Assembly (NCBI GenBank): GCA_001643675.2
Contig: LSRY02000010.1
Location: forward strand, 1,178,001 to 1,242,000
From: Monocercomonoides exilis PA203
Lineage: Eukaryota; Protista; Preaxostyla
Direction of reading: 5' to 3'
DNA length: 64,000 nucleotides
Numbering within the stretch: the first letter of the stretch is position 1; each line of letters starts with the position of its first letter. The translations under genes and the position numbers were made by a program. The notes beneath the pieces were generated by a model. It was not told the origin of the DNA. It searched no databases and saw only the letters and a list, made by a program, of their open reading frames with translations. Below, one piece after another: positions 21,275 through 54,337 of the stretch.

Positions 21275-21942
21275 TAATGCAAATTTCATACATTAATATA
21301 GCAAAAAAAAAAATAAATAAATAAATAAAAAGAAAATAAACTATTTGTTTCAAACTTTTTCTGCAACCTTATCATCACAGGTTTTTGATTCCCATGACAA
21401 AATTAATTATTTAAAATTAAAAATTGGAAAAAATATTAGTTAATTCTGTGCAACACAAAAATCAAAAAAATACATATACATTCATGACAAGACAAAACAA
21501 AACCCAATTAATAAAAATAACAACAACAACAATAATAATTTCCTATTGTCAATGAAAAACTATCACATGAAACATTTCGTTTGTCTGAAAAGAATTTTCG
21601 TTGGAAAGCGATTCATTTTCCTTCAACAATGAAAAGTTTCAACCTATAAAATTGAATTTATTGCTTTTCAAAAATTATTAGAATTTGAATATCCAAAAAT
21701 TGTATTCCTTGAAAAGAAACTCTTATAAATACAAAAAAGAGAATAATACGCTTTTCTTTTGAAATCAAAAACAAAAACAAACATTAAACTCAGACAAAAA
21801 ATTCAGCTTCAATATGAAAAAGTTAAAAAATAAATTTTTATTCATCAAGAATTATGTTCAACAAAAATTAATTTTTTCGGAAACAAACAAATATATTGGG
21901 CGCAGGGATTTTTATTTTAAAGTTATTTTCCTATCTTCTTCC

Positions 21943-24900
21943 ATGGCGAATATCTTCACCAGCGCAAAAGCTGCAATAAATATTGTTGCTCTTATAATTA
22001 TTGTTGTTAATTGCAGCAATGGCAGAGGAATTGCCGAAAAACAATATCAGCAAGAAATGAATTGGGAGATGCCAAAAAGCACGATCAGCATTGAAAACAG
22101 CAGCAACAAATACTACAATAAAAATGACATAGGTGCAGCAAAAGTCATATTCTCATCGAGCGTTCGTGCTTGTTGTATTCGAACAAATCTGAATATCATC
22201 AACACCTCCTTGTGTGTGACTCATCTCACATTAGCGCCTCTCGCTGGTTGTCCACTCATCACTGCCCAACACCACTCAGCTGCCACCATCTGCTCCTCCA
22301 TTTGCCAAGTCAACCCAGCAACAAAATCTCCACTTTTCCTCTCTGCCCATGCCTCACTCGCCCTCACCAACTTCTCCCTCACCATCCACCAGCCAGACAT
22401 CCTCTCCTTCCCCCTTTTCTCCGCCCCAAACAATCTCCTTCCAGATGCCCACTCCCCAATCCCCACCTCCTTCTCCATCTCCCACTCCTCTTTCTCCTCG
22501 TTCATCTCCCTCATCCAGCCCTTCCTTTTTTCTCCTTCTTCTTCCCGTCTCCATAACCATCACCAATCCCATACCCACCTCCAAATCCACCTCAATCTCC
22601 ATCTCTCAAACACCCTCTTCTCCAACATCTCCTCTCCTCAATCCCATCCATCTCTTCCATTCCTTCCCTCATACTCACTCAACCCATTCACCTCAACCAC
22701 TTCTTCCTCTTCTTCCATTTCCACCAACACCAACACCAATTCAATCCCCTCCTTCTCCCTTCACTCATCCCTCTCCATCCGCTCAACCATCTTCAAACAC
22801 ACTCACAACCCCATCGATGGAGCCATCCTCCCTTCTCTTAACAACCCATCCACTTCTCTCTCTGCCTTCAACGCTTCTTTTCTCCACCAAACACGTTCTT
22901 TGTCAAATGATGCTGTGGTACATATTGGAACCGAATCTCAACGAGAAACACCTGGAAGATTGACTTCATTTGATGAGAACAATCATCGCTTCGAATGGTG
23001 CGAATGGAATAATTCTGGAGATGGCTCATCTGGAGGTGCGCTTAATGTTGAATGCACAAATGCAAATCTAACAATCTGTTCCTGTTCATATACAAAATGC
23101 TCAAGTAAAGGACATGGTGGAGCGTTATACTGCTTGTATTTGTCAAATGTTATCATCACCAAATCCAATTTCACAAACTGTTCTGCTGCTCATGGAGGAG
23201 CAGCCCACACCGCTTATCCACAGCAAAATTCTATTTATTTGCATTCAGATAATAAAATTGAAAATTGTTCAATATCTAGTTGGTGTGGGACTGGCTGGTA
23301 TTTTTACATTGGCGCTTTTCCATTAAATGGACAGTTCTTGTTTTCCAAATGCAAATGCATTACAAATTTTGGTGGTGATTCTGCTGGTTCTATAACATTT
23401 TATAATCCTCCGGCATCAAAGCCAAATATTTTTAAAATTAATGACTGTCAGTTTATAAACAACAAATTGAATTCTTCTTCAACATATGGTGGCGCTGCCA
23501 TTTACAGCTATTCAACTTATGCCTGGATGAGTGGGACAAAATTCATCTCCTTCTGTTTCTTCGATGGCAATACAGCTGCAAATGGCAGAGGAAACGATGT
23601 ATTCTTCGGTGATAGTTATATCAGCCAATCTCCATTCGAGAATTGCGGATCGACAACCTTATCCAAAAGAGTATGGAATGCGGGAACAGCAGATAACTCC
23701 AATTTCAATGGTTGGTTACCATTTGTAATGCCAAATAAAGTTGTTGCCAACAGCGGAATGGATGCAGATGCCTGTGGCAGACAAGGGCAAACCCCATGCG
23801 CCACTATCGAATATGCTTTGTTCGGCTTTGTTTTTTTTGAATATACTTCCCTTACCCTCCTGAACTCTTCCTTCACTCCTTCTCAGGTACTCTCTTTCCG
23901 TGCCCCAAATGCAAAAATCACTGGAATTGGAACAGATGCAACCATCATCGCCTCCAGTGGCATTCCTCAACCATCATCATCATCTTCTTCTTCATTTTCT
24001 TCATCATCTTCCTCTTCACCAGATCCATCTGCCTCTTCTGCCCTCTTCCAACAAACTCAGGGCTCCCTCACAGTCTCTGCCCTCGCCATCGCCCACAACT
24101 CCACAAACCCCATCACCCCCATCCTCTTCCACCTCTCCGGTAACTCCCCTTCCCTCAACCTCAACACAACCACCATCACCGGAACAACCCCATCTTCATC
24201 ATCAATCACAACTCCCCTCTTCTTCCTCACTGCTGGCTCCCTCGCCCTCAACCACACAGCAATCACCCAACTCACCCTCAACAGCCAAAGCATCTTCCAC
24301 CTCACCTCCCTCACCGCTCCCCTCACCCTCAACTCCTCCAACATCACCCACATCACCTCCACTGCCACCCCCACCAGCTGTGTCCTCTCCTCTGCCACCT
24401 CCCCTGCCCTCTCCATCTCCCTCACCAACTGCACCATGACCAACATCAACTCAGAACAGTTGAGCCAACAAACTGCCACCAATGGCGGGTGCATCTCATT
24501 CGCCTCATCTGCCCCTGCCAACACATTTTCAGTGAGTGATTCCACCTTTTCCAGCTGTTCTGTGAGCGAGGATACAAGTTCTGGAGGAAGAGGCGGTGCT
24601 CTCATGATCGAGTTCAACCATGGCTCACAAGTGTCAGAATCCTCCTTTTGCATCACCAATATCGTGTTTTCAGGCAACAAGGCCAGTGTCGGAAGAGATG
24701 TGTATTTTGTGTGTGAATCCCTTGTCGCTTCTGTGAAGGAACCCTTGTTCACTTTCATGAGAAGCATCACTCAGAAAGACAACTCGGTTGTTGGACATGA
24801 CAGAACAGAAGCATTCGGTGATTGGGATGTGGATTTGTTTATATTCTTTGAAGGTTTCTTTTCTGACACGATATATGTTGATGGAACATCTGGAGTGGAG

Positions 24901-27900
24901 AATGCGTATTGTGGAATGGAGAAGGCACCATGTTTGAATGTGAATTATGGGATGGAGCGTTTGAAGAGACCACAGATTGTTCTGCAGGAGATTATTGTGT
25001 GTTCAAAATCAAAGATGGAAGGGTGTGTAAATATGAGCGGGATGAGTTTGAAGGCAAAAATTAAGGCAATTGTCGAAATCGAATGCCAAAGGGAAGTGAG
25101 TGGATCTGAAGAATGCGTTCTGAAATCAGCATCACTGACAGAAATGAAATTTATTGGAATTGTTGTTCCTTCAAGTTTCAGCAGAACAATCACTGATGTG
25201 ATTGAATCGGGCACTCAAAATGGCGAATTGCATATGAAGAACTGTGAGATGAGTGTTTTTGGAGGGAAGCAAAATACAATTGCATTTTTCTTGATCAAAT
25301 CGACAGGAAAGATGATTGAACTGGACTCTGTCACGATTTCAGATGTGAAATCAGCAGTCTCGTTGTTTTCACTTTCGCTTTCAACAGGAAATGTGAATGA
25401 ACAGGAATACAAGGTGAAACTGTTGAATTGCACACTGGAAGGATTGGAGATTGATAGCGGAGTTGCAGTAGAGGGCAAGGCAGCCGTATTTGAAGGGAAT
25501 GTGGGAGTTGAAATGGTGATGAATGGAAGTACAATTAACGGGACATTGTCAGAGAAGAGCAAAGAAGGAGGAGCACTGCAGATAGCGTTGAGTGAAGGAG
25601 GATTTATGACAATTGAAAATAGCTCATTTTCTGGATGTGTCTGTGAGAACGGGAGTGAGAGAGGAAAAGGAGGATTCTTGTATTTGGATTGCCAAAATTG
25701 CTTTGAAGAAAAGCCATTTATTTTTGATGTTGGAGTGACTTTTGAGAACAATAATGCAGCAATTGGAAAAAATGTGTTCATTTTGGGAAAGGATTTTAAT
25801 TCTTCTGTGACAAATGCTTCGTTCAAGTTTGATTATTCATCAATGATAGATGATAAAAATTTGTTTGTGGGAAGTGATAGAAAACATCAAGAAAAGGATT
25901 TGTTCATGTTCCTCGTTCCATTCAGCTCATTTGAGATATTTATTTCATCGAGTGGATTTGATGTTGCAAGATGTGGAAGCGAAGAAGAGCCATGTTTCAC
26001 GATGTGGAAAGGGATGGAAAACATGAAAAAGGAGAATGGAAAGAAGACAATGCAAATTGAAGGATCAACTGTTATTCGAGATTCATTCAACTTATCCAAT
26101 TTATTGATCAAAAAAGCTACTTCAATAGGAGAAGAGAACACGAAAACAGTCTTGAATTTTGAAAAGGCAGCTGGAAGTCAACTGGAGTATTTCATGGGAA
26201 ATGATGATCATCTTGAATTGACGAATATCCATCTCCAACTGACGTCTGGATTTGACAATTCAGCCAAAACAATTATTTCAAACAAAGAAGGAGCTTTGGT
26301 GATAACTGGATGTTCATTCCATTCAGAGGCAGAAGTGAACAATGGATTTGATTGTGTATTTGTGGATGCGATTGGAGGAACTGTGGAAGTGAATGATTTG
26401 TCTGTTGAATCATGCGATGTTGGAGATAGCATTTTTGTCATTCACGATGCTGGAGTTGTTTGCCATTTTGTGAATGTTCGAGTGGAATCATTGAATGAAA
26501 GCAGAGGATGCATTTTGTCAATCAAGAAATCTGAAGCAGGATTGAAAATTAATGAAGAAGATGAAGAATGTGTGAATATTGAGATTGGCAAATCATCATT
26601 TTCAGGAGTGAAGAGAAGTGACAATGGAGCAAGCATTTTGGAGTCAATGAGCGAGAAAAAGATTTGCTTGGTTGTGAATGAGAGCAGCATAACAGAAGAT
26701 AAAGCAGAATTGAGTGAAAAAGGAGGGGCAATATTTTTCACATTGGGAAAGTCTGGTTCAATGAAAATAGTTGAATCAACAATCAGTCATTGCAGCTGCA
26801 GTATTGGTTCAGGGAAAGGAGGGGGAGTGTATTTGGCAACAAAGGAAACAGGGCTTCTCAATTTCACATTTGTGGGGATGAAGTTCAGTGCAAATACAGC
26901 AAAAGTGGGGAATGATATTTTCATTGAATGCTTCAACATCTCATCACAGATCAATGAAACTCAATTTCAATTTGATCTTCGAGAAGGTCATTATTCACGA
27001 ATTAATGTGATATATGGAAGAGATGAATGCGATTATCCGAATGATACAGATCTGATTGGATTTGTAACAATCCATCAGAGCGATATAATAATTGTTAGTA
27101 GTATAAATGGTTCAAATGACAGACAATGTGGAACAAACACACTTCCATGTGATTCGATTGATTATGGCCTTCTACATTTGACTTCAGAGCTAATAAGTCA
27201 AATTCTCATTGTTGAAGAGAGTGTAATAAGTGGAGAGATAAATTTGAAAGAGATGTGCTTGAGCTCGAAGAATAGAGATTTATGCAAAGTTGAAGTGAAA
27301 CAAGGAATTGAAAAAACAAAGGATTCTGTAATTTCAACAACAGGAGAAGTTTCTTTATTGAGAATAAGATTTGTGTTTGATTCAGATTTCATTTCTTCAC
27401 ATGAATCATTAATATCACCGGAGGGAGGGATTCTTGAAATTATGAATTGTTCTTTTTCGTCAAAACAACCTAATGAAGAAGGAAATGCAACTTTTGCAGA
27501 CATTCAATTTCACATTTTCAACATGGCAAAAGGAGAATTACAACTTGACGGATGTTCTTTGTCAAATCTCATTCTTCAAAAATCTGCATTATATCTTTTA
27601 TCTCCTCTTCCATCAGTTATTGATTCATTAACAATATCCAATTCAACAATGGAAACTTCTCTGTTAGATATTAATGAATGTGGTCAATTAACAATTAAGG
27701 ATTTCAATACAGAAAATATCACAGTTGAAGGAAATGAAGAATCATTGATATCTTGCCTGTCAGCGAAAAAGACAATTCAATTGACAAATTGCACAATGTG
27801 TGGAGTCAGTTCAAAGACCGCAAAAGGGAAATTGATGAAATTGGAGAATTGCTTGGATGTGAAAATGGACAGTTGCGTTTTTGATGGAAGTGCAAAGGAA

Positions 27901-29982
27901 AGAAATGAAAAGAATTTGAATTCCGAAGGGGAGATGTGCAAATGGGATGGATCTCTTGTGGATGTTGCGAAGAGTTCAGTGGTGATGAAAGATTCAACAA
28001 TTGCAAATTCACCAGAAGGTGGAATAACAATGAATGGAGGGGCATTGACTGTTAATGATGGAAGATTTGAAAACAACAATCCATCAATTGAAAGATATCC
28101 ATCATTGAGAAGAAATATCATCTGTTCAGATTCTGGAACATTGAATGTGGTGAGTTTGAAAGGAGGAGATGGAGTTTTGCCAAACACTTCACTTTGGATG
28201 TTAAATGAAGGGTGCAGTTTTGAAGGGATTGTTTCAGAGAGAGATTCATCATTCTTCATTCCAGTTCTGGAAAGTGTGGAAGCAAAGGAAGAAGCTGATA
28301 GAATGAAGCTGATATTCAAAGGAATGCTTCTTATCCCATGTAATCTATCATTCTCGGTTGTGAAGAGGAAGGGAGAAGAGAAGGAGATTGAAAAACATGA
28401 TTTTGATTCAAATGGATTTTTGTCAGAAAGAGAAGCAGAAGGACGTGTTGTAAAAGATCTCATCAGAAGTTGTGGAGATGAAGTCGAAGTTAGTGTGTAT
28501 GTTTTGTTTGGAAATACAGAATCTCCTTCATCAACAAATTCAATCGTTCTGAAGAATGCAAGTGAAAATCAGTCAAGCGGAAATGAAAAGATTGTTGAAG
28601 GAGGAAAAGAAGGGAAATCGTTATGGATGTGGATTGTGATAGTTATGGCAGTTGTTCTATTAATTATTCTGATTATATCAATAATATTGGCGATGAGATG
28701 GAGAAAGCAAAAGAGAAGAACAGAAGAATTGGAGATAATCGTGGAAGACAATATTAAAAAGGATCCGAAGCTGATTGAGATGGTGACGATGGAGATGTCA
28801 CCAGAGGAGCAGTGGAGGAGAGCTGAGAGGGAGGCAGAGAAAAAGAACGATGAAAGGATGAAGAAGAGAATAAATGGAAAGCAGATGGTGCATTCTGAGT
28901 CCGAAGAGCATTTGCTGTCTGAGAGTGGATCAACAGAATACATCTTGGGAAAGGATTCAGACAAGATTCCAGAATGGGCACTGGAGAAGGCTGACGAGAA
29001 AGAAGAAGATATTTCGAGAAAGAGAACTCCATCTCCATCCATTTCATCCACTTCAACAACAGATACTTCAGACACGGAATCCACATTTGTTCGCATGGAA
29101 GATGCTTGTCCGACCACCTCGTCGATGTCGAACTTGGTGGATGCCATGGCCTGTTCGTCTCCTCATGAGAAGCTGATTGTGGACTTGAGGGATTCGCTGT
29201 TCATGTTGCTTCATGGAAGGAATAAGACAAAGGAGATGGCAATAGGAAGTTTGCAGGAGAGGGAGCAGACAGCTGCCCAAATCCTGTTCTGGGTAGCCAA
29301 TCTCGCGCTTCACTCATTTGACGAAATGGAAAATCCTCTTCAATCTCTTTCCAATCTGAGCCCTCACATTGTGTTGTTCTCTGAGCACATGGTCATCTGC
29401 ATTGTGATGCACTCAGATCTTTTATCAGATGACAGTTCAGACTCATCATCCATCTCTTCATCAACTATTGTGACATCTGCCAGTGATAATGATGATGATG
29501 ATGACTCTCTGCCTTCATCGGCTTTTGAGGATGAAGATTATTACAAAAAAGAGTGTTTAAGGTGGAAGGCACCAGAGCTGCTGATGAACAAAAACATTGG
29601 AGCAACAAATGAATCAGTTTCATTCTCGATTGGGATGATGCTGTGGGAGTGCTTGACACTTCAAATACCGTTTGGAGATTATGAAGCAGAGATAGCAGGG
29701 CAGAAGATATCCAATGGTGAAAGGCCAAGCTTGGAGAGTGTGAGTGAATCGAGACTTCACAATCTGGTGTTGAGTTGCTTGTTGCAGAAAGTGGGAAGCA
29801 GGCCAACGCTGCTGGATGTGAAGAAGGAACTGTTTGGGATGTATGGAAAAGGCGGATGGGTGATGACAGAAACGGATGCAGTGGGGGTTGTGCCGATCAG
29901 GGTTAATTATGGAAGTGGAAGGAGAAGGGAAAGCGGAGCGATATCAAAAGAAATATTGCTTGTTGAGGAGAAAAATGAATGA
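21943..29982 (+). CDS. Giant intronless receptor-like protein A: signal peptide, beta-helix/Pmp-like GGA repeats, TM helix, pseudokinase C-lobe
   Basis: Open frame from 21814; likely start MANIF at 21943, where homology with copy C begins and a signal-like segment follows. GGA(I/L) and FxxNxA motifs, four Gx(D/E)..CG....PC modules, TM LWMWIVIVMAVVLLIILIISIILAM, then LRWKAPELL..SFSIGMMLWECLTLQIPF..GERP..RPT. Confidence 0.88.
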   Translation: MANIFTSAKAAINIVALIIIVVNCSNGRGIAEKQYQQEMNWEMPKSTISIENSSNKYYNKNDIGAAKVIFSSSVRACCIRTNLNIINTSLCVTHLTLAPLAGCPLITAQHHSAATICSSICQVNPATKSPLFLSAHASLALTNFSLTIHQPDILSFPLFSAPNNLLPDAHSPIPTSFSISHSSFSSFISLIQPFLFSPSSSRLHNHHQSHTHLQIHLNLHLSNTLFSNISSPQSHPSLPFLPSYSLNPFTSTTSSSSSISTNTNTNSIPSFSLHSSLSIRSTIFKHTHNPIDGAILPSLNNPSTSLSAFNASFLHQTRSLSNDAVVHIGTESQRETPGRLTSFDENNHRFEWCEWNNSGDGSSGGALNVECTNANLTICSCSYTKCSSKGHGGALYCLYLSNVIITKSNFTNCSAAHGGAAHTAYPQQNSIYLHSDNKIENCSISSWCGTGWYFYIGAFPLNGQFLFSKCKCITNFGGDSAGSITFYNPPASKPNIFKINDCQFINNKLNSSSTYGGAAIYSYSTYAWMSGTKFISFCFFDGNTAANGRGNDVFFGDSYISQSPFENCGSTTLSKRVWNAGTADNSNFNGWLPFVMPNKVVANSGMDADACGRQGQTPCATIEYALFGFVFFEYTSLTLLNSSFTPSQVLSFRAPNAKITGIGTDATIIASSGIPQPSSSSSSSFSSSSSSSPDPSASSALFQQTQGSLTVSALAIAHNSTNPITPILFHLSGNSPSLNLNTTTITGTTPSSSSITTPLFFLTAGSLALNHTAITQLTLNSQSIFHLTSLTAPLTLNSSNITHITSTATPTSCVLSSATSPALSISLTNCTMTNINSEQLSQQTATNGGCISFASSAPANTFSVSDSTFSSCSVSEDTSSGGRGGALMIEFNHGSQVSESSFCITNIVFSGNKASVGRDVYFVCESLVASVKEPLFTFMRSITQKDNSVVGHDRTEAFGDWDVDLFIFFEGFFSDTIYVDGTSGVENAYCGMEKAPCLNVNYGMERLKRPQIVLQEIIVCSKSKMEGCVNMSGMSLKAKIKAIVEIECQREVSGSEECVLKSASLTEMKFIGIVVPSSFSRTITDVIESGTQNGELHMKNCEMSVFGGKQNTIAFFLIKSTGKMIELDSVTISDVKSAVSLFSLSLSTGNVNEQEYKVKLLNCTLEGLEIDSGVAVEGKAAVFEGNVGVEMVMNGSTINGTLSEKSKEGGALQIALSEGGFMTIENSSFSGCVCENGSERGKGGFLYLDCQNCFEEKPFIFDVGVTFENNNAAIGKNVFILGKDFNSSVTNASFKFDYSSMIDDKNLFVGSDRKHQEKDLFMFLVPFSSFEIFISSSGFDVARCGSEEEPCFTMWKGMENMKKENGKKTMQIEGSTVIRDSFNLSNLLIKKATSIGEENTKTVLNFEKAAGSQLEYFMGNDDHLELTNIHLQLTSGFDNSAKTIISNKEGALVITGCSFHSEAEVNNGFDCVFVDAIGGTVEVNDLSVESCDVGDSIFVIHDAGVVCHFVNVRVESLNESRGCILSIKKSEAGLKINEEDEECVNIEIGKSSFSGVKRSDNGASILESMSEKKICLVVNESSITEDKAELSEKGGAIFFTLGKSGSMKIVESTISHCSCSIGSGKGGGVYLATKETGLLNFTFVGMKFSANTAKVGNDIFIECFNISSQINETQFQFDLREGHYSRINVIYGRDECDYPNDTDLIGFVTIHQSDIIIVSSINGSNDRQCGTNTLPCDSIDYGLLHLTSELISQILIVEESVISGEINLKEMCLSSKNRDLCKVEVKQGIEKTKDSVISTTGEVSLLRIRFVFDSDFISSHESLISPEGGILEIMNCSFSSKQPNEEGNATFADIQFHIFNMAKGELQLDGCSLSNLILQKSALYLLSPLPSVIDSLTISNSTMETSLLDINECGQLTIKDFNTENITVEGNEESLISCLSAKKTIQLTNCTMCGVSSKTAKGKLMKLENCLDVKMDSCVFDGSAKERNEKNLNSEGEMCKWDGSLVDVAKSSVVMKDSTIANSPEGGITMNGGALTVNDGRFENNNPSIERYPSLRRNIICSDSGTLNVVSLKGGDGVLPNTSLWMLNEGCSFEGIVSERDSSFFIPVLESVEAKEEADRMKLIFKGMLLIPCNLSFSVVKRKGEEKEIEKHDFDSNGFLSEREAEGRVVKDLIRSCGDEVEVSVYVLFGNTESPSSTNSIVLKNASENQSSGNEKIVEGGKEGKSLWMWIVIVMAVVLLIILIISIILAMRWRKQKRRTEELEIIVEDNIKKDPKLIEMVTMEMSPEEQWRRAEREAEKKNDERMKKRINGKQMVHSESEEHLLSESGSTEYILGKDSDKIPEWALEKADEKEEDISRKRTPSPSISSTSTTDTSDTESTFVRMEDACPTTSSMSNLVDAMACSSPHEKLIVDLRDSLFMLLHGRNKTKEMAIGSLQEREQTAAQILFWVANLALHSFDEMENPLQSLSNLSPHIVLFSEHMVICIVMHSDLLSDDSSDSSSISSSTIVTSASDNDDDDDSLPSSAFEDEDYYKKECLRWKAPELLMNKNIGATNESVSFSIGMMLWECLTLQIPFGDYEAEIAGQKISNGERPSLESVSESRLHNLVLSCLLQKVGSRPTLLDVKKELFGMYGKGGWVMTETDAVGVVPIRVNYGSGRRRESGAISKEILLVEEKNE

Positions 29983-30312
29983 ATGAATGGAAATATGATA
30001 AGATGTGTGACACTGAAAATCATTCAAGGAACAAATATTTGATTAATTGGGTGTGTGAAGAAAAGAAAGAAATATGAATGGTTGTTGCGATGAAAACAGG
30101 TTGGATATTGGACAAACAGCAATTATGAAAAGCAACACCTTCGAAATAAGAAGAAATGATTTTTAAAACGAGATTGAAGGAGGAAAAAAAAAACAGAAAA
30201 GTGGTTTTTAAATCACGAATTATTTGGAATGGCAAAAATGTTTTTTTCTCAAAATATTGAAATGAATGATGTTTTTGTTCAAATTCGATTAGATGTTCAT
30301 TTTTTTGGAATA

Positions 30313-30524
30313 TGGCTGATCCTTTTTGAAATCAAACTTTTGTTCGAGTTTTGATGATAAAATTTTCCTCAATGGGAAAATAAAGATTATTTATCTTTGT
30401 ATGTATATCTTGATTGAAAGTTTTAACTTGTGTTTTGCTCTTTTTTTTTTCCTTATTCTCATTGAGACAAAAATTTTTTGGTTGAAAACTCGAATGAAAG
30501 TTTGATTTCAAAAAGGATCAGCCA
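30313..30524. mobile_element. Small MITE-like element with ~40-bp TIRs in the 3' flank of gene A
   Basis: TA|TGGCTGATCCTTTTTGAAATCAAACTTT...AAAGTTTGATTTCAAAAAGGATCAGCCA|TA. Confidence 0.65.
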
Positions 30525-34046: not shown

Positions 34047-34185
34047 TCTTTCTTTTCAACTGATAGACAAAAGAAGGAAGAAACTATTATTGCGCATGGA
34101 AAGATTGTTTGAAAAGAAAAAGTTTGCTCAAAAAGAATTCTGTACCCTTTATAAGAATTATTTTAATGAATTTTTTATTTTCCCA

Positions 34186-41935: not shown

Positions 41936-42373
41936 TCCAATAGTATTAGATCTTTAACCCACAAGACATAAAATTATGATCTTTGTGACTTTGATTAACA
42001 ATAAGATGAAACAAAATTCATTTCGTATAAACATCCTTTCATGTAATACATATTCATTAAAGGATGTGCGCGTAGAAAAACTTTATTTTTCAAGTTATTT
42101 ACTTTTATGTGTGGCAATAACAAAATGAGATTCTTCTTCTCTATCAAGAATATTTTTTTATCAAATATAAAAAAATAATTAATAAATAAATGCTAACGAA
42201 AAGTTAATTGAAATTTATGACTATTTAAAAACGATGCAACTCTGATCACAAAGGTCGTTTGGAGCATCTGAAGGCTTCATTTAGGCACACTTATCTTCAA
42301 ATGAATCTGCAAAGGCTCACGTTTTCATTATTAAACAAAGTGAAGATGAAATTCCATATTTCTTTAAAGAGTT

Positions 42374-44419: not shown

Positions 44420-45411
44420 ATCCACTTGTATTTTATTTTCAGCTGCTTTAAGTTCTTTTTCAAAAATTTTAAACAAAAATTTTGACCCATAATAAATAAT
44501 ATTGTCTCATTTTTCAAAAAGTGATTTTTACCAAAAAATCATATTAAATGAATAATTATAAAAGAAAGTTATCGAATTTACAATCAAAATTTTAATAGTT
44601 TTAAAATGGACAAGTTTTTGTTCAAAATTAAAACCGATTTTTCAGTTATCATTTCTTTTTTCATTTTCGTATCGGTAAAAAATCTGTATAGTCAATATCT
44701 TTTTGTATGTGAACTATTTATATAATTCTTCATTTTTTCATGATAAATTGAGTATTATAAAATGGTTTTTATTCCGATGAAATCATGGAATATTTACATT
44801 TTGAAAATAAAAATAATTATATTGCTTGCATAATTGTTAATTGATTCATTAAAAAACTTACGTTTTTAATAGTTTTCGATGAATTAAATGATGAGTAATT
44901 GAAATGCTTAGTGCAAAAGATAATAAAAACGGTTTTTATGTGATAAATGAAGAAATTTTTGTTCCCCTGTCTTTAAAATCAACTATTTTGCTTTATTTTT
45001 GTTGAAAGAAAGAAGTGGTTGCTGAATATAAAAGGTGTTGAAAAAAGAAATATTTGAATTACAAGAATTACAAGAAAACCTTCAAATAAAAACACACATA
45101 AATACTCGAAATAAAACCTGCCAGTTGGGAAAATGAACAAAAAAACTGAATGAAGGAAAAATATCAAGCATTTTGATTTGTAATGGAGTTATAACAAGAC
45201 AAAAAGAAGAGAGAGAAATAAATATCAAAAACATCCAACAAAAGAATTGAAAAAAATTTCATTTGTCTCTCAAAACTTAATAAATTTTTGAAAAATAAAG
45301 AATATCTATTTTGAAAAAACAATGATATAGCTTCAAAAACAATTATTCATGCAATGTCATAAACAAAATAAATAGGACGAAAGTCAAAATAAATGAAAAC
45401 TTCAAAGCGTA

Positions 45412-45623
45412 TGGCTGATCCTTTTTGAAATCAAACTTTCATTCGAGTTTTCAACCAAAAAATTTTTGTCTCAATGAGAATAAGGAAAAAAAAAAGAGCA
45501 AAACACAAGTTAAAACTTTCAATCAAGATATACATACAAAGATAAATAATCTTTATTTTCCCATTGAGGAAAATTTTATCATCAAAACTCGAACAAAAGT
45601 TTGATTTCAAAAAGGATCAGCCA
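45412..45623. mobile_element. Second copy of the small MITE-like element (3' flank of gene B)
   Basis: Same TIR pair as 30313-30524, duplicated with the arm. Confidence 0.65.
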
Positions 45624-45952
45624 TATTCCAAAAAAATGAACATCTAATCGAATTTGAACAAAAACATCATTCATTTCAATATTTTGAGAAAAAAACATTT
45701 TTGCCATTCCAAATAATTCGTGATTTAAAAACCACTTTTCTGTTCTTTTTTCCTCCTTCAATCTCGTTTTAAAAATCATTTCTTCTTATTTCGAAGGTGT
45801 TGCTTTTCGTAATTGCTGTTTGTCCAATATCCAACCTGTTTTCATCGCAACAACCATTCATATTTCTTTCTTTTCTTCACACACCCAATTAATCAAATAT
45901 TTGTTCCTTGAATGATTTTCAGTGTCACACATCTTATCATATTTCCATTCAT

Positions 45953-48900
45953 TCATTCATTTTTCTCCTCAACAAGCAATATTTCTTTTGATATCGCTCC
46001 GCTTTCCCTTCTCCTTCCACTTCCATAATTAACCCTGATCGGCACAACCCCCACTGCATCCGTTTCTGTCATCACCCATCCGCCTTTTCCATACATCCCA
46101 AACAGTTCCTTCTTCACATCCAGAAGCGTTGGCCTGCTTCCCACTTTCTGCGACAAGCAACTCAATACCAGATTGTGAAGTCTCGATTCACTCACACTCT
46201 CCAAGCTTGGCCTTTCACCATTGGATATCTTCTGCCCAGCAACCTCTGCTTCATACTCTCCAAATGGGATCTGAAGTGTCAAGCACTCCCACAACATCAT
46301 CCCAATCGAGAATGAAACAGATTCCTTTGTTGCACTCATCTTCTTGTTGATCAGCAGTTCTGGTGCCTTCCACCTCAAACACTCTTTCTTGAAGGCATCC
46401 TCATCCTCAAAAGCCGATGAAGGCAGAGAGTCATCATCATCATCATTATCACTGGCAGATGTCACAATAGTTGATGAAGAGATGGATGATGAGTCTGAAC
46501 TGTCATCTGATAATAAGTCAGAATGCATCACAATGCAGATCACCATGTGCTCAGAGAACAGCACAATATGAGGACTAAGATTTGCTAAAGACTGAAGAGG
46601 ATTTTCCATTTCATTAAAGGAATGAAGAGCAAGATTAGCAACCCAGAACAGAATCTGAGCAGCTGTCTGCTCCCTCTCCTGCAAACTTCCTATTGCCATC
46701 TCCTTTGTCTTATTCCTTCCATGAAGAAGCATGAACAGCGAATCCCTCAAGTCCACAATCAGCTTCTCGTGAGGAGACGAACAGGCCATGGCATCCACCA
46801 AGTTCGACATCGACGAGGTGGTCGGACAAGCATCTTCCATGCGAACAAATGTGGATTCCGTGTCTGAAGTATCTGTTGTTGAAGTGGATGAGATAGAAGG
46901 TGATGGAGTTCTCTTTCTCGAAATATCTTCTTCTTTCTCATCAGCCTTCTCCAGTGCCCATTCTGGAATCTTGTCTGAATCCTTTCCCAAAATGTATTCT
47001 GTTGATCCACTCTCAGATAAAAGGTACTCTTCAGACTCAGAATGCGCCATCTGCTTCCCATTCATTCTCTTCTTTATTCTCTCACAATTCTTCTCCTCAG
47101 CCTCTCTTTCTGCTCTCTTCCACTGCTCTTCCGGTGACATTTCCATTGTGACCATCTCAATCAGTTTCGGATCCTTCTTCACTGTATCATTCACAATCTC
47201 TTCCAGTTCTTCTGTTCTTCTCTTTTGCTTTCTCCATCGCATCGCCAATATTATTGATATAATCAGAATAATTAACAGAACAACTGCCATAACTATCACA
47301 ATCCACATCCATAACGATTTCCCTTCTTTTCCTCCTTCAACAATCCTTTCATCCCCATTTGTCTTTGTTTCACTTGCATTCTTCAGAATAAATGACTGAG
47401 TTGACGAAGGAGATTCTGCATTCCCAAACAAAATATTAACGCTCACCTCAACATCATTTCCACAACTGCTGATGAGATCCTTTGCCACACTTCCTTCTGC
47501 TTCTCTTTCTGATAAAAATCCATCTGAATCAAAATCATGCTTTTCAATATCTTTCTCTTCACCTTTCCTCTTCACAACTGAGAATGACAGATTACATGGG
47601 ATAAGAAGCATTCCTTTGAATATCAGCTTCATTCTATCAGCTTCTTCCTTTGCTTCCACACTTTCCAGAACTGGAATGAAGAATGATGAATCTCTCTCTG
47701 AAACAATCCCTTCAAAACTGCACCCTTCATTTAACATCCAAAGTGAAGTGTTTGGCAAAACTCCATCTCCTCCTTTCAAACTCACCACATTCAATGTTCC
47801 AGAATCTGAACAGATGATATTTCTTCTCAATGATGGATATCTTTCAATTGATGGATTGTTGTTTTCAAATCTTCCATCATTAACAGTCAATGCCCCTCCA
47901 CTTATTGTTATTCCACCATCTGGTGAATTCGATATTGTTGAATCTTTCATCATCACAGAACTCTTCACAACATCCACAAGAGATCCTTCCCATCTGCACA
48001 TCTCTTCTTCTTCATTAAAATTCTGCTCATTTATTTCTTTTGAACTTCCATCAAAAATGCAACTGTCCATTTTCACATCCAAGCAATTCTCCAATTTCAT
48101 CAATTTCCCTTTTGCTTTGTTTGAGCCAGCTCCACCAATTGTGCAATTTGCCAATTGCATCTTCTTTTTCGCTGACAGGCAAGATATCAATGATTCTTCA
48201 TCTCCTTCAACTGTGATATTTTCTGTATTGAAATCCTCAAGTGTAAATTGTCCACATTCATTTATATCTATCAGAGAAATTTCACTTGTTGAATTGCAAA
48301 TGGTTAATGAATCAATAACTGATGGAAGAGAAGATGAAAGATATATTGCTGTTTCTTGAAGAATGAGATTTGATATCTTGCATTCCATAAGTTGCAATTC
48401 TCCGTTTTTCATATTAATAATACAAAATGGAATGTTTGCAAAATCTTCTTTTCCTTCTTCATTAGGTTGTTTTGACGAAAAAGAACAATTCATAATTTCA
48501 AGAATTCCTCCTTCCGGTGAAATAAGTGATTCGTGAGAAGAGATGAAATTCGAGTCAAATACAAAGCTGACTCTCAGCAATGAAACTTCTCCTGTTGTTG
48601 TTACCAAAGCATCCCTTGTTCTTTCAATCCCTGATTGCACTTCAACTTCACAATATTCTCTCTTCTTCGAACTCAAACTCATTTCCTTCAGATTTATCTC
48701 TCCACTTATTACACTCTCTTCAACAATGAGAATTTGACTTATTAGCTCTGAAGTCAAATGTAGAAGGCCATGATCAATCGAATAACATGGAAGTGTATTT
48801 GTTCCACATTGTCTGTCATTTGAACCATTTATACTACTAACAATTATTATATCGCTCTGATGGATTGTTACAAATCCAATCAGATCTGTATCATTCGGAT

Positions 48901-51900
48901 AATCGCATTCATCTCTTCCATATATCACATTAATTCGTGAATAATGACCTTCTCGAAGATCAAATTGAAATTGAGTTTCATTGATCTGTGATGAGATGTT
49001 GAAGCATTCAATGAAAATATCATTCCCCACTTTTGCTGTATTTGCACTGAACTTCATCCCCACAAATGTGAAATTGAGAAGCCCTGTTTCCTTTGTTGCC
49101 AAATACACTCCTCCTCCTCTTCCCGTGATACCGCTGCAGCTACAATGACTGATTGTCGAGTCAATCATCTTCATCGATCCAGATGCACCCAATGTGAAGA
49201 ATATTGCCCCTCCTTTTTCACTTGTTTCTGTTTTGGCTTCTGTTATGCTGCTCTCATTCACAACTAAATCTATCTTTTTCTCACTTGCTGACTCAAAAAT
49301 GCTTGCTCCATTGTCACTTCTCTTCACTCCTGAAATTGATGAATTGCTAATTTTGAGATTCATTTCCTTTCCTTCTTCATTTATCTTCAATCCTGGTTCA
49401 AATTTCTTGATCGATAAAATACATCCTTTGCTTTCATTTAACGAATCCACCCGAACATTCACAAAATAGCAAGTTATTCCAGAATCATGAATGACAAACA
49501 TGCTGTTTCCAACATTGCATGATTCAACAGACAAATCATTCACTTCCACATTTCCTCCAATCATATCCACAAATGCACAATCAAATCCATTGTTCACTCC
49601 TGCCTCTGAATGGAATGAACATTCAGTAATAGCCAAAGCTCCATTTTTGTTTGAAATGATTGCTTTGGCTGAGTTGTCAAATCCCGATGTTAACTGGAGC
49701 TGGATATTCGTCAATTCAAGATGATCATCATTTTCCATGAAATATTCCAGTTGACTTCCAATTGACTTTTCAAAATTCAATATTGCTTTCGAGTTCTCTT
49801 TTCCCATCTTTACACTCTTTTTGATCTGATAATTGGAAACATCGAATGAATCTCGAATGAAAGCTGATCCTTCAATTTGAATCGTTTTCGTTTCATCTCC
49901 TTCTTTCACATTTTTCATCACTTTCCACATTGATTGACATGGTTCTTCTTCACTTCCACAACGAGCCACATCAAATCCTTCTGATGAGATAAATATCTCA
50001 AATGAGCTGTATGGAATAAGGAACATGAACAAATCTTTGTCTGAATGAAAATCATCACTTCCAACAAACAAATTGCTGTCATTTATCATTGATGAGTAAT
50101 TGAAGTGGAATGAATCATTTGTCACAGAACTATTCAAATCCTTTCCCCAAATGAACACATTTTTTCCATTGGTTGCTTTGTTGTTCTCAAAAGTTACGCC
50201 AACATTAAAAATAAATGGATTTTCATTCAAACAATTTTGATAATCCAAATACAAGAATCCTCCTTTTCCATTGCCTGATGAAAGTGAACAAAATGACACA
50301 TTTGTTGATTTGATCACCAAATCTTCATTCCCTTTCAATGTCACCCTTGCAACACCTCCTTCTTCACTTCTTGAGTTCTCAATATTTGAAAAGTTGCTGT
50401 TTTCAAGCAAAACAGAAGAAGCCATCACAAATGGAGATTTGGAAAATGAGGTTCCTTTTAAACTGCATCCCTTCAATGTGCAACTTCCAGTGGTTGTTGT
50501 TATCAATGAGTATTGAATGATATCTGATGATGATTGAATTTCAAATAAACAGTTTACGAGTCGAAGAACTCCACTCGATGAAACCAATGAATTAATATTT
50601 GGCTCAAATTGACTTGGAATTTGGAGCTTCAAAGACAACAAGCTGAGTGAAACTGTTGATGAAATAACAGATGAAGTTGTTGCAGAATCTCCATTGATTC
50701 TCTCTTCAAAATGAACAATCTTGTGTTTAATGGTATCTCCTTCATTCACACACCCTTCAATCGCAAATGCATCTGCGAATGAATAAATATCTTCTATTGT
50801 CCCTTCATCTTTCACTTTCACTTTCCTTTCTCCTTCTGTCCCACTTCTGTCAATGTGATTAATCCCACTTTTCATCGATTCGCATGGGAATATTTCACTT
50901 CCACACCCCAATGTGTCATGTCCATCTGTCGACACAGTCACCTCCACCCACTTCAGTCCAACAAGAAACACTCGAAGATCCATTTCCCCATAAATCCCAT
51001 CTTCTCCAACAAATGCATTCCCATCCTCCTTGTAACCTGAGCAATCAAATGCAAAACGCTCTGTATTCACACTGTTGACCAGATTGCTGCTCTTCACAAA
51101 TATGTTCTTCCCAACTTCTGCCCTGCATTCACAAAATGAAATAGATGATAGCATAAATCCCCCTTCATTCAAGTTGCAATCCAAAAATATTCCACCACCT
51201 CTTCCTCCGTTATTCACGTCCTCGCTCACACAACAGCTGGAAAAGGTGGAATCACTCACTGAAAATGTGTTGGCAGGGGCAGATGAGGCGAATGAGATGC
51301 ACCCGCCATTGGTGGCAGTTTGTTGGCTCAACTGTTCTGAGTTGATGTTGGTCATGGTGCAGTTGGTGAGGGAGATGGAGAGGGCAGGGGAGGTGGCAGA
51401 GGAGAGGACACAGCTGGCGGGTGTGGCAGTGGAGGTGATATCGGTGATGTTGGAGGAGTTGAGGGAGAGAGGATTTGTGAGGGAGGTGAGCTGGAAGATG
51501 CTTTGGCTGTTGAGAGTGAGTTGGGTGATTGCCGTGTGGTTGAGGGTGAGGGAGCCAGCAGTGAGGAAGAAGAGGGGAGTTTTTATAGTTATGGAGGTTG
51601 TTCCGGTGATGGTGGTTGTGTTGAGGTTGAGGGAAGGGGAATTATCGGAGAGGTGGAAGAGGATGGGGGTGATGGGGTTTGTGGAGTTGTGAGCGATGGC
51701 GAGGGCAGAGACCGTGAGGGAGCCCTGTGTTTGTTGGAAGAGGGTAGAAGAGGCAGATGGATCAGGTGAAGAAGAAGAGGAAGATGAAGGCTGAGGAATG
51801 CCATATGAAGAGATAATTGTGGTATCTGAGCCATTTCCGGTGATTTTGGTGTCAACTGCGCTGAAAGTGAGTGTTTGAGAAGGAATAAATATTGAGTTGA

Positions 51901-53812
51901 GGAGAGTGAGGGAGGTGTTTTGGAGGTGGGAAATGAAGCCGTTGAGGGCATACTCAATGGTGGCACATGGTGTGTGCTGAGGTCTACCACAGATTTCCAT
52001 ATCAATTCCGCTATTGGACACGATTTTGTTCTGGGCTATGAGAGGGAGCCAGCTGTTATACTCTGTGTTATCAGCTGTTTCACAATTCCACACTCTTTTT
52101 GTTGAGGTTGTTGAACAACAATTTTCGAATGGTGATTGAGTGATACTTGTTCCATTGAAGAATGCATCATTTCCTCTTCCATTTATTGCGGAGTTTCCAT
52201 CAAAAAAACAAAATATGATGAATTTCACTTCATTCATCCAATCATACGTTCTGGTGCAACACAGAGCAGCGCCACCGTAGGTAGTTGGATTTTCTACTTT
52301 ATTTCCGATGAACTGGCACTCTTGGAGCAAGCACTGTTTTGGTTTTTCTGGTGGATGCCAATTAAACGTGACTGCTCCTGCCGTATCTCCACCAGTATTT
52401 GCAACACAGATGCAATTTTTAAACAAGAATTTTGCATCTGATGGCATGTTATCGAGACCAAAATACCAACCAGTCCCATAAGCGTTTGTTATTTCACAGC
52501 TTTCCACTCTATTATCTGAGAATGTCCAAACAGCATTTGATTGTGGATGCCATATTGCGGCTGCTCCTCCACCAGATGCAGAGCAGTTTGTAATATTGGA
52601 TTTTGTGATTTCCATTTTCAACAAACTTGCACAATACAAAGCTCCACCATTTCCATTGCTTGAACAATTATTGAATGAACAAGAAGTGATTGTGAGATTT
52701 GCATTTGTGCTAATAACTTTAAGTGCACCACCATAATCATTCCCACCATTTGAATCATTCCATTCGCACCACTCAAAGCGATGGCTGTTCTCATCAAACG
52801 AAGTCAGTCTTCCAGGTTTCGCTCTTTGGGTTTCGGATCCGACATGCACGACAGCAGTATTTGATGAAGAGCGTGTTTGGTGGAAGAAAGAAGTGTTGAA
52901 GGTAGAGAGAGAAGTGGATGGACTGTTGAGGTTGGGGAGAATGGCGCCATCGATGGGGTTGTGAGTGTGTTTGAAGACGGTTGAGCGGATGGAGAAGGAG
53001 GAGTGAAGGGAGAAGGAGGGGATTTTATTGACGTTGGTGGAAGAACAGGAAGAGGTGGATGATGTGAATGAATTGAGTGAGCGTGAAGGAAGGGATGGAG
53101 AAGATTGAAGTGATTGAGGAGAGGAGATGTTGGAGAAGAGGGTGTTTGAGAGATGGAGATTAAGGTGGATTTGGAGGTGGGGATGGGATTGGTGATGGTT
53201 ATGGAGACGGGAAGAAGAAGGAGAAAAAAGGAAGGGCTGGATGAGGGAGATGAACGAGGAGAAAGAGGAGTGGGAGATGGAGAAGGAGGTGGGGATTGGG
53301 GAGTGGGCATCTGGAAGGAGATTGTTTGGGGCGGAGAAAAGGGGGAAGGAGAGGATGTCTGGCTGGTGGATGGTGAGGGAGAAGTTGGTGAGGGCGAGTG
53401 AGGCATGGGCAGAGAGGAAAAGTGGAGATTTTGTTGCTGGGTTGACTTGGCAAATGGAGGAGCAGATGGTGGCAGCTGAGTGGTGTTGGGCAGTGATGAG
53501 TGGACAACCAGCGAGAGGCGCTAATGTGAGATGAGTCACACACAAGGAGGTGTTGATGATATTCAGATTTGTTCGAACACAACAAGCACGAACACTCGAT
53601 GAGAATATGTTTTGTGCTGTGACAATATTATGATTATTGTAGTATTTGTTGCTGCTGTTTTCAATGCTGATCGTGCTTTTTGGCATCTCCCAATTCATTT
53701 CTTGCTGATATTGTTTTTCGGCAATTCCTCTGCCATTGCTGCAATTAACAACAATAATTATAAGAGCAACAATATTTATTGCAGCTTTTGCGCTGGTGAA
53801 GATATTCGCCAT
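45953..53812 (-). CDS. Giant intronless receptor-like protein B (paralog of A)
   Basis: Frame open to 53941; likely start MANIF at 53812. Same domain order as A with near-identical termini and diverged internal ectodomain blocks. Confidence 0.88.
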   Translation of the reverse strand: MANIFTSAKAAINIVALIIIVVNCSNGRGIAEKQYQQEMNWEMPKSTISIENSSNKYYNNHNIVTAQNIFSSSVRACCVRTNLNIINTSLCVTHLTLAPLAGCPLITAQHHSAATICSSICQVNPATKSPLFLSAHASLALTNFSLTIHQPDILSFPLFSAPNNLLPDAHSPIPTSFSISHSSFSSFISLIQPFLFSPSSSRLHNHHQSHPHLQIHLNLHLSNTLFSNISSPQSLQSSPSLPSRSLNSFTSSTSSCSSTNVNKIPSFSLHSSFSIRSTVFKHTHNPIDGAILPNLNSPSTSLSTFNTSFFHQTRSSSNTAVVHVGSETQRAKPGRLTSFDENSHRFEWCEWNDSNGGNDYGGALKVISTNANLTITSCSFNNCSSNGNGGALYCASLLKMEITKSNITNCSASGGGAAAIWHPQSNAVWTFSDNRVESCEITNAYGTGWYFGLDNMPSDAKFLFKNCICVANTGGDTAGAVTFNWHPPEKPKQCLLQECQFIGNKVENPTTYGGAALCCTRTYDWMNEVKFIIFCFFDGNSAINGRGNDAFFNGTSITQSPFENCCSTTSTKRVWNCETADNTEYNSWLPLIAQNKIVSNSGIDMEICGRPQHTPCATIEYALNGFISHLQNTSLTLLNSIFIPSQTLTFSAVDTKITGNGSDTTIISSYGIPQPSSSSSSSPDPSASSTLFQQTQGSLTVSALAIAHNSTNPITPILFHLSDNSPSLNLNTTTITGTTSITIKTPLFFLTAGSLTLNHTAITQLTLNSQSIFQLTSLTNPLSLNSSNITDITSTATPASCVLSSATSPALSISLTNCTMTNINSEQLSQQTATNGGCISFASSAPANTFSVSDSTFSSCCVSEDVNNGGRGGGIFLDCNLNEGGFMLSSISFCECRAEVGKNIFVKSSNLVNSVNTERFAFDCSGYKEDGNAFVGEDGIYGEMDLRVFLVGLKWVEVTVSTDGHDTLGCGSEIFPCESMKSGINHIDRSGTEGERKVKVKDEGTIEDIYSFADAFAIEGCVNEGDTIKHKIVHFEERINGDSATTSSVISSTVSLSLLSLKLQIPSQFEPNINSLVSSSGVLRLVNCLFEIQSSSDIIQYSLITTTTGSCTLKGCSLKGTSFSKSPFVMASSVLLENSNFSNIENSRSEEGGVARVTLKGNEDLVIKSTNVSFCSLSSGNGKGGFLYLDYQNCLNENPFIFNVGVTFENNKATNGKNVFIWGKDLNSSVTNDSFHFNYSSMINDSNLFVGSDDFHSDKDLFMFLIPYSSFEIFISSEGFDVARCGSEEEPCQSMWKVMKNVKEGDETKTIQIEGSAFIRDSFDVSNYQIKKSVKMGKENSKAILNFEKSIGSQLEYFMENDDHLELTNIQLQLTSGFDNSAKAIISNKNGALAITECSFHSEAGVNNGFDCAFVDMIGGNVEVNDLSVESCNVGNSMFVIHDSGITCYFVNVRVDSLNESKGCILSIKKFEPGLKINEEGKEMNLKISNSSISGVKRSDNGASIFESASEKKIDLVVNESSITEAKTETSEKGGAIFFTLGASGSMKMIDSTISHCSCSGITGRGGGVYLATKETGLLNFTFVGMKFSANTAKVGNDIFIECFNISSQINETQFQFDLREGHYSRINVIYGRDECDYPNDTDLIGFVTIHQSDIIIVSSINGSNDRQCGTNTLPCYSIDHGLLHLTSELISQILIVEESVISGEINLKEMSLSSKKREYCEVEVQSGIERTRDALVTTTGEVSLLRVSFVFDSNFISSHESLISPEGGILEIMNCSFSSKQPNEEGKEDFANIPFCIINMKNGELQLMECKISNLILQETAIYLSSSLPSVIDSLTICNSTSEISLIDINECGQFTLEDFNTENITVEGDEESLISCLSAKKKMQLANCTIGGAGSNKAKGKLMKLENCLDVKMDSCIFDGSSKEINEQNFNEEEEMCRWEGSLVDVVKSSVMMKDSTISNSPDGGITISGGALTVNDGRFENNNPSIERYPSLRRNIICSDSGTLNVVSLKGGDGVLPNTSLWMLNEGCSFEGIVSERDSSFFIPVLESVEAKEEADRMKLIFKGMLLIPCNLSFSVVKRKGEEKDIEKHDFDSDGFLSEREAEGSVAKDLISSCGNDVEVSVNILFGNAESPSSTQSFILKNASETKTNGDERIVEGGKEGKSLWMWIVIVMAVVLLIILIISIILAMRWRKQKRRTEELEEIVNDTVKKDPKLIEMVTMEMSPEEQWKRAEREAEEKNCERIKKRMNGKQMAHSESEEYLLSESGSTEYILGKDSDKIPEWALEKADEKEEDISRKRTPSPSISSTSTTDTSDTESTFVRMEDACPTTSSMSNLVDAMACSSPHEKLIVDLRDSLFMLLHGRNKTKEMAIGSLQEREQTAAQILFWVANLALHSFNEMENPLQSLANLSPHIVLFSEHMVICIVMHSDLLSDDSSDSSSISSSTIVTSASDNDDDDDSLPSSAFEDEDAFKKECLRWKAPELLINKKMSATKESVSFSIGMMLWECLTLQIPFGEYEAEVAGQKISNGERPSLESVSESRLHNLVLSCLSQKVGSRPTLLDVKKELFGMYGKGGWVMTETDAVGVVPIRVNYGSGRRRESGAISKEILLVEEKNE

Positions 53813-54337
53813 GGAAGAAGATAGGAAAATAACTTTAAAATAAAAATCCCTGCGCCCAATATATTTGTTTGTTTCCGAAAAAATTAATTTTTGTTGAACA
53901 TAATTCTTGATGAATAAAAATTTATTTTTTAACTTTTTCATATTGAAGCTGAATTTTTTGTCTGAGTTTAATGTTTGTTTTTGTTTTTGATTTCAAAAGA
54001 AAAGCGTATTATTCTCTTTTTTGTATTTATAAGAGTTTCTTTTCAAGGAATACAATTTTTGGATATTCAAATTCTAATAATTTTTGAAAAGCAATAAATT
54101 CAATTTTATAGGTTGAAACTTTTCATTGTTGAAGGAAAATGAATCGCTTTCCAACGAAAATTCTTTTCAGACAAACGAAATGTTTCATGTGATAGTTTTT
54201 CAATACAATAGGGGATAAGTATTTTTATTGTTATCGTTATTATTTGGGTTTTGTTTTGTCTCGTAATGTGTGTTTGAAAATATTGATTTTTGAATTTCAT
54301 AAAATTAACTGATATTTTATCCAATTTTTAATATATA

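Follow-up and report, generated by a model that had tools for sequence, protein, structure and literature searches.

How do two giant receptor genes come to face each other across a core of ordinary genes, identical in some stretches and hardly alike in others, and is the arrangement kept because it reshuffles them? The question is raised by a 64,000-nucleotide stretch of the genome of Monocercomonoides exilis PA203 (Eukaryota; Preaxostyla), hereafter the window (GenBank assembly GCA_001643675.2, contig LSRY02000010.1, positions 1,178,001 to 1,242,000 of the forward strand; C2:1178001-1242000 in the 82.3-Mb, 101-contig genome that we searched). Unless another contig is named, positions are those of the window. 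A first-pass annotation made from the letters alone had proposed an invertible locus, in which crossovers between two inverted arms flip the core and join the halves of the two receptor genes, here called A and B, into new chimeras. Our results favor a different history. With a probability that we put at roughly 0.78, the locus is an old inverted segmental duplication that has been homogenised by gene conversion from arm to arm and diversified by conversion from dispersed paralogues.

Anatomy of the inverted duplication

Self-BLAST of the window and a repeat finder, with edges set by pairwise alignment, revealed an inverted repeat with arm A at 21416-30990 (+) and arm B at 44946-54332 (-). The self-BLAST pairs 21416-24598 with 54332-51193 at 84% identity, and 25663-30990 with 50269-44946 at 91%. 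Each arm consists of a receptor gene between its 5' and 3' flanks, the duplicated unit being ~9.6 kb long and comprising the gene, 0.5 kb of 5' flank and 1 kb of 3' flank. The outer edges lie at 21416 and 54332 and the inner edges at 30990 and 44946. No homology above that of shuffled controls was found past the arm ends, whether the flanking miniature inverted-repeat transposable elements (MITEs) were kept or removed. Between the arms lies a single-copy spacer of 13,955 bp (30991-44945; self-BLAST, repeat finder and list of open reading frames, ORFs) that carries ordinary genes.

Gene A (21814-29982, +) and gene B (45953-53941, -) stand tail to tail, and both are intron-free. They are intact ORFs of 2722 and 2662 amino acids, and their proteins are 74% identical. 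Since codon 44 is where both the other members of the family and a gene fragment close by begin to resemble A and B, the real start is probably Met44, at 21943 in A and at 53812 in B. The sole Pfam match in either protein is to the C-terminal half of a kinase domain (PF07714, 33-35 bits against a cut-off of 23.1; 33.2 bits, C-lobe only, for gene A), and kinases of the PDB likewise align to the C-lobe only. A scan of the kinase tail for motifs found APE, and did not find the glycine loop, HRD or DFG. Given these missing motifs and the restriction of the alignment to the C-lobe, the tail is probably a pseudokinase. By hydropathy, protein A has a signal-like helix at amino acids 47-65 and one membrane helix at amino acids 2267-2297. 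The ectodomain of ~2200 amino acids has no Pfam match; part of it resembles right-handed Beta_helix, Chlam_PMP and DUF1565 in the language-model features of a protein atlas, which is a lead and no proof, and the nearest atlas cluster is from Preaxostyla. The architecture of B, examined by the same means (ORF list, Pfam, hydropathy), is that of A. Taken together this suggests giant membrane proteins of type I that combine a beta-helix-like ectodomain with a degenerate kinase tail.

The first description of the locus, with convergent genes A (+) and B (-) in inverted arms of ~9.5 kb around a 14-kb core, is thus borne out by two intact ORFs, arms of ~9.6 kb and a spacer of 13.95 kb. It had also pictured the flanks as nearly identical while much of the ectodomain is not, and this contrast is borne out too.

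Mosaic likeness of the two arms

The two arms share exact tracts at fourteen places, each 68-569 bp long and together 3.3 kb, and the stretches between them are 33-90% alike. In a sliding comparison of 200 bp, the likeness is 100% at 21559-21958, 22359-22558, 26870-27069, 28070-28269 and 29870-30869, whereas most other windows give 58-90% and the region 24550-25669 only 33-46%. The non-coding flanks, delimited by pairwise alignment, show the pattern most clearly. The 5' flank (21416-21942, +; partner 53813-54332) is ~80% alike with indels at 21428-21552 and 100% from 21553, and the 3' flank (29983-30990, +; partner 44946-45952) is 99-100% alike over 29983-30916 and ~88% in its last 75 bp (30917-30990). 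The near-identity of the flanks (99-100%) accordingly holds for their inner parts.

The mosaic extends to synonymous sites. In windows of 100 codons the synonymous divergence (dS) between A and B is 0 in the exact tracts and between 0.4 and >2 beside them, and the ratio of nonsynonymous to synonymous divergence (dN/dS) is 0.04-0.8. Positive selection was considered as the cause of the variable stretches and rejected, because dN/dS is below 1 in every window; and since dS itself ranges from 0 to >2, selection at the protein level does not explain the mosaic. A Sawyer-type test on the 4317 polymorphic columns of a 17-gene alignment, consisting of A, B and 15 paralogues sampled from more than 200, returned 11 A-B fragments of a length that was not reached in any of 2000 permutations. 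Inside the identical tracts the best of the 15 other paralogues is only 80-92% alike, and the tracts therefore reflect exchange from arm to arm rather than universally conserved sequence. These comparisons point clearly to recombination between arms A and B.

Every one of the coding exact tracts (68-395 bp) is read in the same frame in A and in B. A crossover within one of them would thus leave two intact chimeric genes and a flipped spacer, with nothing lost. In principle, then, the reciprocal chimeras that the first-pass annotation foresaw (A5'-B3' and B5'-A3') could be formed in frame, although the segment flipped by a crossover in an exact tract is computed at 14.1-32.6 kb and not at the 31-45 kb it had given. 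Its reading of the locus as a recombining one holds as to substrate, geometry and exchange between the arms; what the sequence records, however, is gene conversion rather than inversion, and this is not peculiar to the pair.

A third copy and the age of the duplication

A third copy of the whole unit, ~9.7 kb long, was located through flank matches at about C5:1447113-1457579 (-), and is described here by its coordinates and identities. Its 5' flank is 71-73% and its 3' flank 84-89% identical to the flanks of A. Across the genome the 5' flank matches solely arm B (94% overall) and this C5 copy, and the 3' flank, apart from a small dispersed repeat, likewise solely arm B (99%) and the C5 copy. 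Homology between the C5 copy and A extends ~80-100 bp beyond both A/B arm ends, whereas homology with B stops at the arm end. The end points are therefore nested, which argues against a mobile element with fixed ends, and B looks like a shorter, derived copy.

The same comparison bears on age. The arm edges are 80-88% alike and the C5 flanks 71-89%, as against 99-100% in the inner flanks, which suggests that the duplication is old and that the inner arms were homogenised recently. The C5 copy and the decayed arm edges thereby act as an unconverted internal control for conversion.

Exchange with dispersed paralogues

Over 22815-26850 the nearest relative of each of the two genes is not its partner but another paralogue. 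Maximum likelihood trees of seven segments show how the partners change along the gene. A and B are sisters at 21900-22700 (support 100/99). At 23100-23900 B groups with the paralogue L002, which lies 370 kb off on the same contig (support 95/97), and at 24600-25600 A groups with L002 and a second paralogue, L003 (support 100/98), while B forms a long branch among the 15 sampled paralogues. The tree of 25700-26800 does not resolve the grouping. A again joins L002 and L003 at 27250-27700 (support 95/96), and A and B are once more sisters at 28400-29000 (support 100/100) and 29200-29800 (support 98/99). In the former of these last two segments the sisters are nonetheless ~15% apart, directly beside 100% tracts.

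The switch is most pronounced in the middle cassettes. That of gene A (24560-25669, +; sliding comparison and segment tree) is 33-46% alike to B and 86-94% alike to L002 (C2:825732-833723). Gene B carries a second cassette type (50263-51241, -), of which a genome search found at least 40 copies, the scored matches being 80-87% alike and the best (87%, C2:1078491-1079469) lying 150 kb away on the same contig. On C2 the closest paralogues are located near 1074-1079 kb and 1121-1126 kb. The ~450 bp of ectodomain DNA at 24100-24560 are almost invariant in all 17 genes (24-mers, 2-3 differences in 408 cells). As this block directly precedes the hypervariable cassette, it could serve as a recombination anchor for the whole family.

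Sharing of exact tracts is not restricted to A and B. An exact-match search among the 17 genes found a tract of at least 60 bp in 86 of 136 pairs. Next to A/B, such tracts are most abundant between neighbours on contig C47 that lie 57-70 kb from each other. Two of these pairs are convergent and one is tandem, and they share tracts of up to 557 bp and their non-coding flanks too. Since mosaic tracts are common to tandem and distant paralogues as well, conversion would be general and not special to A/B. The pair appears to be the close-range extreme of a network of distance-dependent conversion, with no special device of its own.

The gene family in the genome

A and B belong to the family annotated as "protein tyrosine kinase / TKL", the largest in M. 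exilis (PMC6759080; PMC8767320), which overlaps the "unclassified repeats" of the published assembly (PMC8767320). The assembly papers treat it merely as a count and as a source of such repeats (PMC6759080, PMC8767320). Our genome search with the receptor gave 8102 first-look candidates; 16 near-full-length paralogous matches were scored, at 71-76% protein identity, and for several of these the search indicated one or two in-frame stops. The genome contains 224 occurrences of a 24-nt family motif, compared with 0 of a control.

In a partial map based on 100 of the 224 motif sites, of 32 neighbour pairs less than 60 kb apart, 24 have their members in opposite orientation (binomial p = 0.007). 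Contig C25, which is very rich in family members, has several minus/plus head-to-head pairs 6-15 kb apart with identical scores to the window query. One such pair is 1520521-1521498 (-) with 1528727-1529704 (+), and others are those at 1547437 (-) and 1553428 (+), at 1496457 (-) and 1502400 (+), and at 2050302 (-) and 2065302 (+). Equal scores are what near-identical inverted duplicates would be expected to give.

The window itself holds two lesser members of the family. A truncated third copy, made up of the N-terminal ~212 codons only (7187-7825, -; ORF 7175-7843), lies 14.1 kb upstream of A and inverted to it; its DNA is 94% alike to A over 7266-7787, and 7266-7820 forms a short inverted-repeat pair with 21909-22463. 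On the other side, 2.5 kb outside arm B, a remnant of 63 codons (56822-57010, +) shows 48% identity to receptor amino acids 641-703 and is probably the relic of an older family member.

Public runs and the integrity of the assembly

Four public DNA runs, made from a single sample and dated 2016 and 2022, were used as Logan contigs, as were RNA runs of a synthetic community. Those placed on 25100-31099 are pieces of 60-500 nt that stop at shared tracts, and their depths were used qualitatively. Stretches specific to A are present in the DNA contigs of both 2016 and 2022, and most of the deviating letters near tract borders in the DNA contigs are B's letters. Inside the identical tracts no second variant was found in the 2016 or 2022 DNA contigs over 25100-31099, which argues against a collapsed or mis-polished repeat. 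The first-pass annotation had named assembly collapse as one finding that would undo its proposal; the contigs of both years cover the tracts and give no sign of it. Look-ups of the exact protein sequences of A and B, in a collection from which records of this genome may be missing, gave no match. Among the RNA-run contigs, one falls on the middle cassette proper to A (25153-25305) and another at 29887-30153, reaching the first 170 nt past the stop codon of gene A. They suggest that gene A is transcribed, with the caveat that RNA libraries can contain DNA.

Spacer genes and neighbouring repeats

The spacer holds a kinesin gene (42374-44476, -; PF00225, E 3e-81) next to arm B, a gene for a Ras-family small GTPase of at least two exons (41150-41935, -), of which two ORF pieces match PF00071/PF08477, and two large ORFs of 1295 and 535 amino acids (34601-40260, +) without a family match. 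For the latter two there was no Pfam match at E<=1 beyond noise, and the atlas gave generic hits below 0.9 (virilizer, MEI1). Of the names first attached to the spacer genes, kinesin is right and "Spg1" is sound at the level of the Ras family; "NAA25-like" for the ORF at 34601-38488 was rejected, there being no Pfam match and only weak, generic atlas hits below 0.9. Upstream of arm A, an ORF at 17502-18422 (+) matches N2,N2-dimethylguanosine tRNA methyltransferase (PF02005, E 7.5e-55), a housekeeping gene.

No recombinase or transposase domain was found by Pfam or the atlas in the spacer or in the flanking ORFs tested, in agreement with the earlier statement that no site-specific recombinase is visible. 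Pairwise alignment of the arm ends showed no recombination sites of the short, conserved kind, the homology being that of the 9.6 kb of gene and flanks, and no matching target-site duplication was seen in the sequence outside the arms.

Several dispersed repeats lie in or near the arms. The shared 3' flank contains a hairpin repeat of ~215 bp (30310-30526; twin at 45410-45625 in arm B) that has many genome matches at 70-76% in both orientations and is present in the C5 copy too. A repeat of ~385 bp at 31082-31465 lies in the spacer, 90 bp from the inner end of arm A, and has at least 40 genome copies at 77-83%. Outside arm A, at a distance of 170 bp, the repeat finder and genome search identified a palindromic MITE-like element of 906 bp (20340-21245) with 323-nt arms that are 98% complementary and a 260-nt centre; at least ~40 full-length copies exist in the genome, at 80-97%. 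Outside arm B, at 25 bp, the same methods identified a hairpin MITE-like element of ~400 bp (54359-54756) with 139-nt arms that are 94% complementary (555 first-look candidates, 40 of them scored at 75-87%), with a short tandem repeat before it at about 54336-54400. The two elements are of unrelated families and lie outside the duplication.

Discussion

We propose the following course of events for the old inverted duplication. A unit of ~9.6 kb would have been copied in reverse 14 kb away, beside the kinesin gene. Double-strand breaks that later arose in either copy would have been repaired by homologous recombination, for the most part with the partner arm, 14-32 kb off, as the template, which would account for 100% identical tracts that include non-coding flanks. 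In other cases the template would have been a dispersed paralogue, which would explain why some tracts, and an entire middle cassette, resemble other members of the family more than the partner. Both genes remain under purifying selection. The anatomy, the mosaic, the switching of partners and the third copy are the observed part of this explanation; what we infer is that break repair was the cause, and in what order the events took place. According to published work, M. exilis has no non-homologous end joining, and its homologous-recombination pathway is fairly complete (PMC6759080).

This explanation should be weighed with some caution, since several points speak against it. Conversion and crossover share intermediates, so that an inversion of the spacer, past or present, is compatible with our data, and the orientation of the spacer rests on one long-read assembly. 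The sister stretches of A and B that are ~15% apart could be imports from unsampled donors, and the data leave the number and direction of conversion events undecided. Finally, the excess of inverted orientation among close neighbours (24/32) could mean that this arrangement is favoured for some reason. In other organisms crossovers accompany some conversion events. The spacer may have been flipped at some past time, and an occasional crossover that flips it and swaps gene halves is a possible by-product of the conversion we propose, which does not require it; the window sequence records no trace of a spacer inversion or of a programmed process.

The alternatives are best taken in descending order of probability. 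The first is that the duplication is recent, that the arms were lately identical, and that all divergence was imported from other paralogues without repeated exchange between the arms. The region 22815-26850, in which each gene is closer to another paralogue than to its partner, speaks in favor of such imports, as do the common family type of B's middle cassette and the large pool of donors (224 motif copies). However, the arm edges are 12-20% diverged with indels, and except in the more distant C5 copy they have no counterpart in other paralogues, so that their divergence could not have been imported. The sister segment at 28400-29000, ~15% apart and directly beside 100% tracts, is equally hard to reconcile with a young duplication, and at least one later homogenising event would be required anyway. 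We therefore regard imports alone as an unlikely explanation.

The second alternative is the invertible receptor-shuffling locus itself, in which recurrent crossovers between the arms flip 14-33 kb and make chimeras, and the architecture is kept for the sake of shuffling. Much of the substrate is in place: the coding exact tracts are all in frame and would give intact reciprocal chimeras with the spacer genes kept, the arms have demonstrably recombined, and the organism depends on homologous recombination (PMC6759080). Moreover, close neighbours of the family are mostly inverted in the partial map, and equal-score pairs occur on C25. Against this, the contigs of the public runs (60-500 nt) break at every shared tract, too short to reveal a flip or a chimera, and the locus has no recombinase, short conserved sites or fixed unit ends. 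Tandem and distant paralogues, which are unable to shuffle by inversion, show the same mosaic, and the diversity of A and B comes largely from other family members rather than from exchange between the two. The excess of inverted neighbours would be equally expected if direct repeats were lost by deletion. On balance this alternative seems improbable to us.

A little less probable again is a genome-wide version, according to which, in an organism that mends breaks by homologous recombination only, inverted pairs of giant receptor genes act as recombinase-free flip-flop loci. Mitotic crossovers in the in-frame identical tracts would then regularly invert the genes in between and make reciprocal chimeras, and inverted pairs would be favoured throughout the genome as a means of shuffling without deletion of essential genes. 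The inverted excess may simply reflect that duplication is often inverted, or that tandem copies are lost by deletion in a recombination-prone genome, and both of these are simpler readings than selection for shuffling.

The two remaining alternatives are very improbable. The arms could be the very long terminal inverted repeats of a giant transposon carrying the 14-kb core, as the MITE-like elements adjoining both outer arm ends might suggest, but these are of unrelated families, no transposase domain occurs in the spacer, no matching target-site duplication is seen outside the arms, and the C5 copy is a single unit whose homology runs ~80-100 bp beyond both arm ends, so that the ends are nested. 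An assembly artefact, in which the inverted join is false or a repeat has been collapsed or wrongly polished, is conceivable in a highly repetitive family that overlaps "unclassified repeats" (PMC8767320) and with an orientation taken from one assembly, but the arms differ by 26% in protein and in their middle cassettes, as two real loci would, A-specific pieces and B letters both occur in the 2016 and 2022 DNA contigs, the identical tracts show no second variant, and both arms join unique sequence on both sides.

The conversion history that we favor has counterparts elsewhere. The closest described case is that of Giardia, where 14 pairs of identical vsp genes are placed head to head or tail to tail; their flanks match perfectly until, 139-729 bp from the gene, they abruptly diverge, and there is evidence that family members recombine with one another (PMC2996952). 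The two systems have in common a metamonad host, a large family of surface proteins, inverted pairs, an abrupt end of the shared flank (~0.5 and 1 kb here) and recombination within the family. They differ in that the Giardia ORFs are mostly identical with 2-4 kb of non-coding DNA between them, whereas the M. exilis genes are four times longer, are 74% alike as a mosaic, and are separated by a 14-kb spacer with at least four ordinary genes. The proteins are also unrelated, a cysteine-rich VSP on the one side and a beta-helix receptor pseudokinase on the other, and the switching of expression in Giardia is epigenetic and does not depend on inversion.

The palindromes of sex chromosomes, such as those of the human Y ampliconic regions, consist of inverted arms of kilobases to megabases around a unique spacer, with conversion between the arms and inversion of the spacer as a by-product. 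The A/B locus resembles them in its inverted arms around a unique spacer and in an identity kept by intrachromosomal gene conversion. However, the arms of the Y palindromes are ~99.9% identical throughout, and those of A/B are patchy because dispersed paralogues donate too. In the var genes of Plasmodium and the VSG genes of trypanosomes, ectopic conversion builds mosaic surface genes, and there as here segments are exchanged among many paralogues that combine conserved frameworks with variable cassettes. For M. exilis, which was isolated as a commensal of the gut, the present data give no sign of antigenic variation, expression sites or mutually exclusive expression.

Bacterial invertible loci and shufflons need a recombinase of their own that acts at short specific sites, and in them the two orientations occur side by side. 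Joining gene halves anew by inversion between inverted repeats is the outcome that had been proposed for A/B, but here the homology is on the scale of kilobases and neither a recombinase nor short sites are present. Judged by its defining marks, the locus is neither a site-specific invertible switch nor a transposon with giant inverted repeats.

Conclusions

The mechanism proposed here is known from other systems, and the finding is a useful annotation rather than a new kind of system. Its interest lies in offering a clean case, with well-defined bounds, of how diversity would arise in the largest gene family of M. exilis, an amitochondriate protist. The pattern would be one of local duplication in either orientation, followed by distance-dependent conversion that homogenises neighbours and imports cassettes from afar. 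The locus also provides a concrete site at which to ask whether crossover-driven inversion occurs in a eukaryote without end joining.

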